A stretch of DNA of 64,000 nt from Oopsacas minuta (Eukaryota; Animalia; Porifera): positions 310,001-374,000 of the forward strand of contig JAKMXF010000300.1 of NCBI GenBank assembly GCA_024704765.1, read 5' to 3'. A model generated the notes under the pieces. That model was given only the letters and a program-made list of their open reading frames with translations. It did not search any database and had not been told where the DNA came from. The position numbers were made by a program, and so were the translations under genes. Below are positions 33,772 to 39,396 of this stretch, one piece after another. Positions within the stretch are counted from its first letter, which is position 1. Every line of letters begins with the position of its first letter.

Positions 33772-35178
33772 ATGGCTGAAACTCAGCCAGTATTCCCTAT
33801 TGACATTCAGTGCATGAAGGTTTCTACATGGTTGGTACAGAGAAACCATTTAGGGAGAGATTGGCGAACTGAATTAAAGGAGCTTACTAAGAAAGAAATT
33901 GCTCCTCAGATACCTTTCCTTCCTGAGGATCTGATCGATAAAATTCCTCAGTTGAAACCTAACTATACGCTTGATTCCAGTATTATTTCTTATTTCGTTT
34001 GCAAACAGATTTTGGATTACTTCAAGAGTAAAGAAGGAAAGGCTACTGATCGATTTGGAGGCTATTTTTCCTCTAGAAATGTGAAAATTTGGTCTAATAT
34101 CGTTACCGAATATAAAAAGGGACTTAAGAATCTAGGAGAAACTGGGTATTTAATCACGAATAATCTAAAATACGAGCTTCCTTACTGGCGCAAACAGAAG
34201 GAGCGTACTAACCAACAAATTCAACAAACTAGTTGTAAAATAAATTCATTGAATCGTCTTAGAGACAATCAGAACGATAAATTTATTAAAACTTGTTCCG
34301 GGTTGGGACTGAGTGTTGAGAGCGATTTTAGCAGACAGGAAGTGTGGAATTTCGCGATTTGTGGCTTGATTGATGATGGAAAAAGCAAAATGTTAGAGTT
34401 GTTGCAATCAGAAATAGTTTATAATCTTATACCAATCAAAGAGTTTTATCTTAACTTTATCAAAGCTTGGCATGTTGGTTGCAAAGAAGATATTGACGTC
34501 ACTAATAAACTACTCCCTCTATTAACTAAAATATTCTCCTTTCTTGATTCGCGAAAATTTGAGCAACCAGCCCAAGATTCCCCTCCTGTTACTAGCTACA
34601 GCGAGTTTGGAATTGAAATTGTTGATTCACAAGAAGATAACTCTGCATACGATTGCTCCTCTTTCCCTCCTGTCAATGAACCATCATTTCGACACCAGTA
34701 TTATAATGAACTACTCGAACTGGAATTTTTTCTGGGACAGAGAAAATTAGAATTTAGTGAATCTAATCAAGATGCGTTTTCTCTTTCCCATTTAGTAGAG
34801 ACCACACCATTAAGGCAAGATCTGGAAAAAATCGATGCAAATAAACTCTCAGAAATGTTGACAACTGTGAAACAAATAAAATTACAATCGAACCAATCTC
34901 AAATTCTCCAGGCTTATAAACTGCTACGCTCTAAACCTTACAGGCTTAGACTTCAAGAAGAAATCCTGAACTTAAAAGCTAACATTAACAAAAACGCCGA
35001 GAAAATAGATGCACTAGATCAGACACAAGCAAATCTGGTTAGAACCCTGCAACAGAATACAAATAAAATAATGGATGTAACTTTAGAGTGTAAATTTCTT
35101 AAAAAGTTATTCGAGATGGAAGCTTCTGAGAATTTTGATAGAACTGTTAATATCGTGGGAGAGATAAATCGCTTGTAA
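33772..35178 (+). CDS. CDK5RAP3: CDK5 regulatory subunit-associated protein 3 (C53)
   Basis: N-terminal PIDIQCMKVSTWLVQRNH (cf. PIDIQTSKLLDWLVDRRH), NLGETGYLITNNLKYELP, FRHQYYNELLELEFFL, C-terminal RTVNIVGEIN. Intronless. Confidence 0.85.
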   Translation: MAETQPVFPIDIQCMKVSTWLVQRNHLGRDWRTELKELTKKEIAPQIPFLPEDLIDKIPQLKPNYTLDSSIISYFVCKQILDYFKSKEGKATDRFGGYFSSRNVKIWSNIVTEYKKGLKNLGETGYLITNNLKYELPYWRKQKERTNQQIQQTSCKINSLNRLRDNQNDKFIKTCSGLGLSVESDFSRQEVWNFAICGLIDDGKSKMLELLQSEIVYNLIPIKEFYLNFIKAWHVGCKEDIDVTNKLLPLLTKIFSFLDSRKFEQPAQDSPPVTSYSEFGIEIVDSQEDNSAYDCSSFPPVNEPSFRHQYYNELLELEFFLGQRKLEFSESNQDAFSLSHLVETTPLRQDLEKIDANKLSEMLTTVKQIKLQSNQSQILQAYKLLRSKPYRLRLQEEILNLKANINKNAEKIDALDQTQANLVRTLQQNTNKIMDVTLECKFLKKLFEMEASENFDRTVNIVGEINRL

Positions 35179-35484: not shown

Positions 35485-38168
35485 ATGATCTCGTTATGGC
35501 GGGCAACCAACTCACTTAAATATGTACCCACGGTTTCTCTGAGTCATGTAGTTAGTCGAATAATGCCCAATTTCACTCAGCCCTCACAGATTTCTATATC
35601 TCAACCTAATATTCCAAAAAGAAGGTAATTAATGGATTTTTCAGCCAATAAATGAGTGTGCTACACGAATATGTTTGTTTAGTTATAAGAATCTGGGCTA
35701 CTTCCGGTCTCTGAGCAAGGAGAAGTCTTTTAGTCAGAAATTCCAGATTTCTGACACTGAGCAACCTAAAGATATTGATGAGATAATGTTCGATATATAT
35801 TCAGAAGGTGGAAAAATACGCGTATTGAGATTCATTGAGGTAAATACATGAGCTAATTTTATGAATTATATTTCAATGCTAATTATTCAGGAGCTTGAAT
35901 CTCATGGAATTAATACAAACAAAGATCCAAGATTCGATTCACTAACCAAACAACTTAATGTTATTATTAGGAAGCAAGGCGGACTATGCAATTTCCAAAC
36001 ATTCAGAGAGTAAGTGTGTATTTTTCTAAATATTCTATTTTAATAGAAACTGTGATATTAGGTTGATCAGTCCAGTGCTTGATGTAATAGTGAGCGTACT
36101 TCAAGGTCGTAATGTTATAAACGATTTTAATTTATTTTCTGACGAGCTGACTAAACTGTTCGATGAAGTGAAAGAAATTAATGGAGGAGAGACTGTTGCA
36201 CAAAATCCACATCTAGCAAGACTCGATTCTGACAAATGGGGCATGTCGATCTGTTCAGTTGATGGACAGAGGTTCTCAATAGGTGACTGTGATGATAAAG
36301 TTGTAATTCAACAGGTCGTGAATCCCTTGATGTACGCGATAGCCCTCACTGATCTGGGAGAGGACTTGGTGCATAGTTTTATAGGACATGAACCTAGCGG
36401 ATTTGGATATGACAAGTTGATGCTGAACACCAAAGGTTATAAAAATCAGTAATTATTAGTTGAGTAATTATTTATGAATTTAATTCCTTTCCAGGTCTGC
36501 CCCATAATCCAATGATCAACTCTGGAGCTCTGGTGTTATCCTCCTTAGTAGCTGTAAGGAATTTATGATAATTGATTGAACAAATTTTCTACTTATTTAA
36601 TTCACCCCTACTTCCTATTTAGCCCAATCAACCACTCCCAGATAGGATAGGCTATGTGAGTGCATCATTTTAGCGTGATATTATTACGATAGCATTGAAT
36701 AAATTTGTATACACATTAGATGATAAACCAACTCAATAGATTATGTGGAGGAGGTAGCACTGTAATTGATCTGCCATCGTAAGTTTGTATATAGAATTAT
36801 ATTACTCATCTGTATTATGTTTGTATTTTCATGTGTAGGTTTATTTTTGAGAGAGAACATGCTGATAGGAATTATGCACTTGCGTATTATCTACGGGAAA
36901 ATAAGGTATTTTAACTTACTGCTTCCATAAGGCTATTTTATTTATTATTGTCTTATGTAGTGTTTTGAGAAATCTATAAAATTGAAGGATATTTGTGACT
37001 TATATTTTCAGGTTTGGAACTCTCATGATAAATTTTGTACTCTTTCAAAATGTTATGATAATATTGTTATTTATTATAGCTAACTTCTTCGCTTTTTGAT
37101 TGTGGGAAATTATCAATAGTAGCAGGAACACTTGCAAATGACGGAGTGTGTCCATTGACAGGGGAGAGAGTAAGTTCTCTATTATTTCTTATAATAACTT
37201 TGAGTATAATTTTATAATATATTCCCAGATACTCAACTCGATTGCTGTCAGAAATACCCTCAGTATAATGAATTCCTGTGGACTATACAATTACTCTGGG
37301 ATGTTCGCTTTCAAAGTATGACCCATATATAATAGCCAACTATATAATGACATAATTTTCTTATTGAGAGTAGGTTGGATTTCCTGCTAAGTCTTCTGTA
37401 TCTGGATTCGTAATGGCTGTAATTCCTAATGTTATGGGTATATGTACATGGTCTCCTCCTCTTGATATCAGGAGTAATAGCGTGAGAGGAATACAGTTCA
37501 TGGAGGTTAGTGTGTGTGTGTGTGTCTATTAATAATTGCTCCATTTAATATTGTATTTTAGAGACTCGTAAAAAAATTCAATTTTCATAACTATGATTTT
37601 TCCCGTGACAAGAATCACATAAACCCAAGGATACGACAGAACTCAATTGAGGTTTGATAACAACTGATTGCTATAATGCCAAAATTTACAATTGTGTATA
37701 CAATTAGGAACATAGGATAACGACAATGTTGTTTGCTGTACTGCACGGATCTCTTGGGTCAATGCACAGGTAATTTAAAGACGGATTATTTAGCATAATT
37801 AGTGCTTTTTGATGACGTAATATATGTAGGTATCTCTCAGCTGGGTATAACTTCAATGCAGCTGACTATGATGGTAGGACTTGTTTACACATTGCTGCTG
37901 CGGAAGGTAACACTAATTTGTATAGAAAATCATTAATTGTAGCTTACTGTTGCTAAATATTTAGGAGCACTTTCTATTGTAAAGTTCTTGGTAGAAAACG
38001 CTGGAGTAGATCCTTCCCCAGTTGACAGGTAAATTCATTCACTATTCCCATAAAAACACAGTTTTATATTTTCATTTAATTAGATGGGGGCAAACACCGA
38101 TTAAAGACGCTACACTTTTCGGACATGAAGACGTGAAGAGATATTTAGAAGCAATAGACATATCTTAG
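35485..38168 (+). CDS. GLS: Glutaminase (GLS)-like protein with C-terminal ankyrin repeats; predicted catalytically inactive
   Basis: Multi-exon gene (about 16 short exons) with a mitochondrial-type leader, [68 protein letters not shown], and ankyrin [15 protein letters not shown] / DRWGQTP. The SxxK motif reads QVVN. Confidence 0.88.
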
Positions 38169-38430: not shown

Positions 38431-39396
38431 ATGCTTAAAACCTCAAAATCTATTGAAAGAGCCAAGAGTTCTTGGACACCAATTAATGACCAAGTAGCGA
38501 ACAGGCAGGTAATACAATTATTTGGCCCTCACACACCTCAGTGTATCTCATTTAATTTGACTTATTTCGTTATAGCTATTCAATGAACGTATGAAACTCC
38601 TATCTCATTGGGTAAGATATGCACTAATGTCTTGTCCATTATTGGGTATTAATATATAATTGCAGCACAAAGCTTGGTCTGAATCTCAAAGGAGAGACTT
38701 CATAACCTACAGCTTGGGTCTCTGTAATGAAGAAGAGCTCTACTATACTAATTTCCTGTTAAAACAAGTTACGCCCTCTGAATGTGTTGATTTCACTAGA
38801 ATACTATTGAAATCTTTATCCATTAGAATTCTATCATATTTGGAGCCCAAATCTCTGTGTAGAGCAGCCCAGGTAATCTATGTAATTTATACAGCGATGA
38901 TACCATGGAGTATAACAAGTATTTAGGTGTGTTGGTATTGGAATTATCTCGCCTCTGATAACAGTCTCTGGCAGTTTAAATGCTGGAGTATTGGTTGGCA
39001 AGCTGATATACATTTGCCGATGAGTGTGCTTGGATTTTGGAAGCATTTTTATGCACAGAAAATACACGAATTAAGGAAGTTACCTTTGGTAGGTTAATTG
39101 AGGGGATAGTACGTCTTAGTTACAATTTCGATTTTAGGTTGAGAATTTGGAAATAGAAGAACCACCCCAACAGGTGGAAAAGATTGAAACGCCGCCGGTC
39201 AAGAAGAAGACAATATCTTTTGTAAAACACAGTACTCAAACTAAAGTTCTTGCTTGGAAATCAAATGATAAGAATGCTAGAGATATTGAAAAGTTGTCTA
39301 AATCATCTGAGAAAGGCAAAATGTTGTTGTCTAGTTTTATGCTTTTTATTTCATAAATACGAATATCTGTAATTTAATTTTATCTTTATAGATTGA
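38431..39396 (+). CDS. FBXO16: F-box only protein 16-like
   Basis: SSWTPINDQ, FNERMKLLSHW, WSESQRR, F-box DFTRILLKSLSIRILSYLEPKSLCRAAQVCWYW, AWKSNDK. Introns 38509-38575, 38612-38665, 38873-38926, 39089-39137. 3' end uncertain: stop at 39356 if unspliced, or 39396 via a possible GC-AG intron. Confidence 0.8.

Follow-up and report, generated by a model that had tools for sequence, protein, structure and literature searches.

The window analysed here, a 64,000-nucleotide (nt) stretch of the genome of the glass sponge Oopsacas minuta, carries on its forward strand a GLS-type glutaminase gene of 17 exons (35485-38168) in which the residues that perform the chemistry in active glutaminases have been replaced. 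Glutaminase is central to nitrogen and glutamate metabolism and is a target of cancer drugs; how it is regulated through oligomerisation and the formation of filaments was worked out only recently. The gene model was obtained by reading the sequence directly and then walking the frame over the junctions by script. The coding sequence comprises 1746 nt, that is 581 codons followed by a TAG stop at 38166-38168, and contains no internal stop. All 16 introns are of the GT..AG type and are very short (51-69 nt); the DNA of this interval is AT-rich, with a G+C content of 39.6% in the exons and 24.8% in the introns. The possibility that an alternative catalytic exon lies inside an intron was ruled out, because introns of only 51-69 nt leave no space for one. 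The features of the gene, with catalytic positions numbered as in the human enzyme, and its upstream neighbour are as follows.

35485-35624 (+): exon 1, ATG and a basic, acid-free leader resembling a mitochondrial presequence
35683-35839 (+): exon 2, N-terminal domain; four orthologues match it at 43-45 of 52 residues
35891-36009 (+): exon 3, N-terminal EF-hand-like region; weak EF-hand_14 match of the single exon (expectation value, E, 0.16)
36062-36435 (+): exon 4, which opens the glutaminase domain and carries the lid, the dead Ser-x-x-Lys motif and the activation loop; PF04960, 66.7 bits
36201-36203 (+): CAA (Gln) at the position of lid Tyr249, from the human alignment; 2 of 6 species have Gln and 4 have His
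36312-36314 (+): CAG (Gln) at the position of the nucleophile Ser286, from the human alignment; CAG in 6 of 6 species
36321-36323 (+): AAT (Asn) at the position of the general base Lys289; Asn in 5 of 6 species, Lys (AAG) in locus L013
36495-36553 (+): exon 5, Asn335 kept; ortholog exon mapping
36623-36655 (+): exon 6; ortholog exon mapping and frame walk
36720-36778 (+): exon 7; ortholog exon mapping and frame walk
36839-36905 (+): exon 8, interface helix; Glu381, Arg387, Asn388 and Tyr394 kept; 20-22 of 22 residues identical in orthologues
36961-37011 (+): exon 9, DLYFQ with Tyr414 kept; motif reading
37080-37169 (+): exon 10; collinear PF04960 match
37229-37315 (+): exon 11, CGLYNYSG with Tyr466 kept here (His in locus L010); motif reading and collinear PF04960 match
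37374-37505 (+): exon 12, PAKSSVSG with Lys481, Ser482 and Val484 kept and Gly483 replaced by Ser; PF04960, 64.2 bits
37562-37651 (+): exon 13, linker to the ankyrin region; sequence comparison and frame walk
37708-37769 (+): exon 14, first ankyrin-like repeat; four orthologues match it at 19-20 of 20 residues, L013 at 17 of 20
37830-37906 (+): exon 15, ankyrin repeat; Ank_4 match (E 3.3e-4) just under the cut-off
37965-38028 (+): exon 16, ankyrin repeat; sequence comparison and frame walk
38084-38168 (+): exon 17, including the TAG stop; sequence comparison and frame walk
33772-35178 (+): CDK5RAP3 gene, a single exon of 468 codons (PF05600), 307 nt upstream of the glutaminase-type gene; syntenic anchor

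Domain structure and catalytic residues

Family searches were performed exon by exon, not with the whole spliced protein. The Pfam family Glutaminase (PF04960; serine-dependent beta-lactamase-like fold, cut-off 27 bits) was matched by exon 4 and exon 12 with the scores given above, and exons 8, 10 and 11 matched at collinear positions of the profile. In a scan of the sponge's own genome the gene scored 65.8 and 61.7 bits. The leader encoded by exon 1 (46 residues) contains 5 Lys or Arg, 0 Asp or Glu and 11 Ser or Thr residues, a composition that suggests a mitochondrial presequence; its start (M-I/N-S-L-W/R-R) is kept in the orthologues described below, and the remainder of the exon is weakly conserved. 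At the other end of the protein, exons 14-17 align by eye with the ankyrin part of full-length glutaminases, although the Ank_4 score of the single 25-residue exon 15 (21.4 bits) lies below the cut-off of 22.7 bits.

Exon 4 aligned without gaps to the human GLS2 and GLS chains (E ~1e-28, about 38-40% identity). In this alignment human QSCVKP corresponds to QQVVNP and human AAYIPQLA to VAQNPHLA. With respect to human KGA, Ser286 is replaced by Gln (CAG), Lys289 by Asn (AAT), Tyr249 by Gln (CAA) and, in exon 12, Gly483 by Ser (PAKSSV). Both the dyad Ser286-x-x-Lys289 and the lid Tyr249 (ADYIPQLA) of active glutaminases (EC 3.5.1.2) are missing from the window gene. It has been reported that the mutations Y249A, S286A, K289A and Y466A each strongly reduce the activity of human KGA, and that its ligand is contacted by Tyr249, Gln285, Ser286, Asn335, Glu381, Asn388, Tyr414, Tyr466 and Val484 (PMC4929687). 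Among these contacts the window protein lacks Tyr249 and Ser286 only, and the base Lys289 is also gone. Tyr466 and the substrate contacts Gln285, Asn335, Glu381, Asn388, Tyr414 and Val484 are all kept, as are Tyr318 and Lys320 in the activation loop, as well as Arg387 and Tyr394 in the interface helix.

The window protein has in common with human GLS (KGA/GAC) and GLS2 (PDB 4bqm, 8szl, 3ss3) the contacts just listed and Lys320, and apparently also the fold and the architecture of leader, EF-hand-like region, PF04960 domain and C-terminal ankyrin repeats; at position 318 it has Tyr, as in GLS2. Unlike the human proteins, it lacks the catalytic dyad and the lid lock (PMC4929687, PMC9949068) and has Ser in place of Gly483. 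With Gln in place of Ser286, Asn in place of Lys289 and Gln (His in four orthologues) in place of the lid Tyr249, the protein is most likely unable to hydrolyse glutamine via the Ser-Lys mechanism of the family. By profile it is a member of PF04960 and, since the defining catalytic features of active glutaminases are absent from its sequence, is better classified as a pseudoenzyme resembling glutaminase than as a glutaminase proper.

These results bear out the description in an earlier note on this DNA, which had been made from the letters of the window. The replacements it gave for Ser (36312-36314) and Lys (36321-36323) and the lid reading VAQNPHLA, with Tyr to Gln at 36201-36203, are the ones found in the gap-free human alignment, and its change of PAKSGV to PAKSSV is the Gly483 replacement of exon 12. 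Its statement that the exons splice in frame agrees with 17 GT..AG-bounded exons and 581 codons ending in a single, terminal stop. The leader, which it considered retained, is basic and acid-free; the ligand-contact motifs, including CGLYNYSG, can be read in the exons; and the retained ankyrin repeats are recovered by alignment to full-length glutaminases, though with the sub-threshold single-exon score mentioned above.

Paralogues, orthologues and selection

A six-frame PF04960 scan of the whole O. minuta assembly (61.5 Mb, 365 contigs) detected three glutaminase loci: the window gene and genes on contigs C365 and C255. We refer to the window gene and its orthologues as clade A, and to the intronless C255 paralogue and its orthologues as clade B. 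The C365 gene (C365:681471-682615, minus strand) is multi-exon, and its motifs ADYIPQLA, QSSVKP, NPMINAG, SERENADRN, DLYFQ, CGMYNYSG and PSKSG are intact; judged by these motifs, it is a working glutaminase, and we call it the canonical gene. Its presence rules out that the window gene is the sole glutaminase of the genome, and it provides the second GLS with an intact SxxK motif for which the earlier note had proposed to search. The two proteins share a mitochondrial-type N-terminus, about 35-40% identity and apparently the same domain order; the canonical gene differs in its intact catalytic motifs and in having far fewer introns. Intron load varies widely among the three paralogues, with 16 introns in clade A, far fewer in the canonical gene and none in clade B. 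The O. minuta genome paper gives one glutaminase, LOD99_13155 (Table S16), and does not mention dead copies (PMC10280926); the canonical gene is probably LOD99_13155.

In O. minuta, clade B is represented by an intronless open reading frame (ORF) of 548 codons (C255:264120-264980; L001:1144-2790, minus strand) with the motifs VDNLPEL and QACINP, in which Tyr is replaced by Asn, Ser by Ala and Lys by Asn. Of the four species (P0001 and its orthologues P0002-P0004), all have Asn for Lys289, and three still possess Ser286 and Tyr249. As Lys289 is Asn in all four species, and Ser to Ala and Tyr to Asn are found in O. minuta alone, the active site of clade B was lost stepwise. Clades A and B share the replacement of Lys289 by Asn and appear to share the GLS-type architecture; clade B differs in being intronless, in keeping Ser286 and Tyr249 in three of four species, in evolving about twice as fast, and in forming a separate clade. 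In a collection of 15 billion proteins the product of the C255 paralogue is present as an NCBI entry, whereas a full-length protein of the window gene was not found; the public annotation may lack the window gene or divide it.

When the exon-4 ORF was used for a word search, fragments sharing 65-79% identity with it (P0121-P0125) came up in five further assemblies (ERZ23487945, ERZ25072730, ERZ25766962, ERZ25072740 and ERZ20067936), which are presumably those of other glass sponges, as judged from synteny and this level of identity only. In all five, CDK5RAP3 (PF05600) lies directly upstream of the dead glutaminase, as it does in the window, so that the order is kept in six of six assemblies. 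Since each of the five loci is directly downstream of CDK5RAP3, they are positional orthologues of the window gene. All 17 exons could be mapped to each orthologous locus with equal lengths, and no stops were found in the 520-528 mapped codons.

At the catalytic positions the six clade-A genes compare as follows. The position of Ser286 is Gln, encoded by CAG, in 6/6 genes. The position of Lys289 is Asn in 5/6, and Lys (AAG) in the most distant locus, L013 (ERZ20067936, L013:5950-6321). The lid position 249 is Gln in two genes and His in four, and Tyr in none. Tyr466 is kept in 5/6 genes and is His in L010 (ERZ23487945, motif CGLHKYSG, L010:6109-6195). Because L013 still has Lys289 and L010 alone has lost Tyr466, the catalytic residues of clade A were lost one by one, with the replacement of Ser286 by Gln coming first. 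Gln285, Asn335, Glu381, Arg387, Asn388, Tyr414, Lys481, Ser482, Val484, Lys320 and Tyr318 are invariant in the six genes, and such invariant positions show synonymous codon changes (for example AGG, AGA, CGA and CGT for Arg387). Clades A and B occur together in at least three species, and at least one assembly besides that of O. minuta contains the canonical gene alongside clade A.

Selection was assessed with Nei-Gojobori counts summed over per-exon codon pairs. Between O. minuta and its clade-A orthologues the proportion of synonymous differences (pS) is 0.70-0.80, which is saturated, and the proportion of nonsynonymous differences (pN) is about 0.09, or 0.18 for L013. In the three unsaturated clade-A pairs, omega, the ratio of nonsynonymous to synonymous substitution (dN/dS), is 0.035, 0.049 and 0.056. 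The N-terminal, core and C-terminal parts are alike in constraint, and 313 of 516 columns are invariant in the six species. For one and the same species pair, pN is 0.086 for clade A versus 0.097 for the canonical enzyme, which demonstrates that the dead copy is constrained as strongly as the live one. The rate of change in clade B is about double that in clade A, but clade B is still constrained. The two further checks that the earlier note had suggested, the codons in orthologues and dN/dS, thus gave the same replacements (Ser to Gln in 6/6, Lys to Asn in 5/6 and loss of Tyr in 6/6 clade-A genes) and strong purifying selection; together with the canonical copy they support its view of a paralogue that is catalytically dead by sequence and nevertheless conserved.

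Dead glutaminases in other lineages

A HMMER search with exon 4 against 1.84 billion representatives returned 1928 relatives, among which only the cluster P0121, a clade-A fragment of 129 residues, exceeded 52% identity. Because no other relative lies above this level, clade A appears to be confined to the six assemblies. We then read the three catalytic columns in 286 proteins and found about 60 domains without Ser and/or Lys. Two glutaminase domains were present in 36 of these proteins; 31 of them combine a live with a dead domain, 3 have two live domains and 2 have two dead ones, with the motif contexts checked by eye. The two-domain proteins (P0140-P0270) are 600-1650 residues long and come from protists, including Rhodelphis and Andalucia, and from others; named cases are Rhodelphis marinus EP00736_P003218, Andalucia godoyi ANDGO_01371 and KAL0219874.1. 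They show the same live-plus-dead combination as the sponge, but in one chain. Their dead domains have Glu, Ala or His at the position of Ser and Ala, Asn or Gly at that of Lys, and are not close to clade A. In the two-domain forms of ~610-660 residues, the second domain repeatedly shows a Q-A-x-x-N-P motif.

Several single-domain homologues from other organisms (P0203, P0259, P0193, P0271 and P0272) keep Ser286 and have Asn in place of Lys289. As the identity of these carriers to the sponge genes does not exceed 43%, the Ser-x-x-Asn state arose repeatedly. A quick tree of the exon-4 segment recovered clade A and clade B, each with a support of 99, within the animal-like part of the family. 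Examined for an inactivation event common to both clades, the tree showed them as separate and did not place them as sisters. The tree neighbours of clade A (P0186, P0194) and of clade B (P0203, P0271, P0279) share only 30-43% identity with any sponge gene and for this reason are uninformative on the origin of the clades. Full-text literature searches yielded no publication that deals with a pseudoenzyme of the glutaminase fold, with the glutaminases of glass sponges or with inactive glutaminase paralogues that bear ankyrin repeats.

Possible roles of the pseudo-glutaminase

The analysis establishes the integrity of the gene, the replacements, the orthology, the purifying selection and the coexistence with a canonical GLS. 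Because the dead copy is as tightly conserved as the working enzyme, it most likely has a non-catalytic role of a kind that is undescribed for the glutaminase family. We consider it probable that the window gene encodes an intact and strongly conserved mitochondrial pseudo-glutaminase that acts as a non-catalytic, ligand-binding partner of the canonical glutaminase. According to this model the protein, given its leader, would go to mitochondria. It keeps the residues predicted to hold the ligand by its alpha-amino and alpha-carboxylate groups (Gln285, Asn335, Glu381, Asn388, Tyr414 and Val484) and probably the fold, and may still bind an amino-acid ligand. It would then join the canonical glutaminase as a non-catalytic subunit and tune the oligomer- or filament-coupled activity of that enzyme. 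Catalysis by GAC and GLS2 depends on closure of the lid Tyr249 on the substrate, which exposes an interface for filament growth (PMC9949068). Because catalysis is tied to this Tyr249 lock and to filament growth, a subunit without the lid Tyr and the nucleophile could cap or retune filaments. The fused live and dead domains of other lineages provide the best independent hint of such a partnership, and the sponge pseudo-glutaminase may be regarded as a separate-gene version of the domain pairs that are fused in protist and other relatives. The functions suggested in the earlier note, namely binding of glutamine or glutamate with signalling through the ankyrin repeats, or regulation of active oligomers, would fit with the retained ligand-backbone contacts, activation-loop residues and interface residues and with the live-plus-dead fusions. 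Plant PDX1.2 and the viral pseudo-glutamine-amidotransferases (PMC6829848, PMC7605207) embody the same concept, a selected dead homologue acting with or on an active enzyme; they belong to unrelated folds and families, and the likeness to the window protein is a functional analogy only.

Several observations weigh against the partner model. Co-retention of the canonical gene was demonstrated in only one of the five other assemblies. The argument for hetero-oligomerisation is drawn from retained motifs and from analogy with fused proteins that are not closely related. Since Tyr466 too is missing from L010, the side chain of glutamine may not be recognised throughout the clade. As for the Gln that invariably occupies position 286, it could have taken on new chemistry instead of marking a mere loss. 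Finally, the collection of 15 billion proteins yielded neither a full-length clade-A protein nor one derived from a transcript, the 129-residue fragment cluster P0121 being the only representative.

The explanations that compete with the partner model differ in how much of this evidence they accommodate. The simplest of them, that the window gene is a young pseudogene or decaying duplicate, or that the catalytic codons reflect an assembly or sequencing error, is suggested by the loss of the catalytic residues itself and by nothing more, and we regard it as refuted, with a negligible chance of being correct. The same codon changes are present at the five orthologous loci, which come from independent assemblies, and this excludes chance as well as an assembly error. 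Neutral decay is excluded because the gene is under purifying selection (omega ~0.04-0.06, with saturated synonymous sites), its reading frames are intact over the 520-528 codons mapped in six species, and its structure of 17 exons is conserved down to the exon lengths. It is also improbable, though less starkly so, that the protein is still an enzyme with a changed chemistry or substrate, for instance one that uses another nucleophile or in which Gln286 takes part in a new reaction. The invariance of Gln286 (CAG in 6/6), a constraint equal to that of the active enzyme and the retention in most genes of Tyr466, Lys481 and Ser482 would be in line with this idea. However, the Ser-x-x-Lys dyad defines catalysis in this fold and the S286A and K289A mutations cripple KGA (PMC4929687), and within clade A position 289 varies between Asn and Lys and position 466 between Tyr and His, a variation that would not be expected if a new active site had become fixed.

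A stand-alone sensor of glutamine or glutamate, whose dead pocket binds the ligand and whose ankyrin repeats relay a signal independently of the canonical glutaminase, has somewhat more in its favour, although we still judge it unlikely as the function of the window protein. The contacts to the ligand backbone are invariant in six species, the ankyrin exons are constrained as strongly as the core, and O. minuta possesses components of glutamate and gamma-aminobutyric acid (GABA) signalling but no ionotropic glutamate receptors (PMC10280926). On the other hand, retention extends to the activation loop, to the residues of phosphate binding and of the interface, and to the mitochondrial-type leader, which points to the same compartment and mode of assembly as the enzyme; the side-chain contact of Tyr466 is lost in one orthologue; and the pattern of live-plus-dead fusions favours partnership with an active domain. 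Sensing by the dead pocket is compatible with the partner model.

The partner model can tentatively be extended beyond sponges, and we put this forward as a possibility that is at present less probable than not. Dead, ligand-binding subunits without lid and nucleophile may constitute a general and undescribed regulatory device of GLS-type enzymes that gates the oligomer- or filament-coupled catalysis of a live subunit; such subunits would be fused to the live domain in many protists and in two-domain proteins of ~600 residues, and encoded by separate genes, in two independent clades, in glass sponges. The conserved dead gene and the recurrent live-plus-dead fusions together suggest a mode of glutaminase regulation that is testable as well as general. 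Clade A offers a clean natural case, in which the chemistry residues alone are replaced, and the pocket, activation loop, interface and ankyrin tail are constrained like those of an active enzyme despite saturated synonymous sites. It also provides a handle on how glutamine and glutamate are dealt with in glass sponges, which are syncytial animals with glutamate and GABA components and without ionotropic glutamate receptors (PMC10280926).

Two minor features were noted at the locus itself. A short (GT)n microsatellite is located at 37512-37527, within intron 12, and the next downstream ORF (38660-38926, plus strand) bears an F-box-like motif (LSIRILSYLEPKSLCRAAQV).

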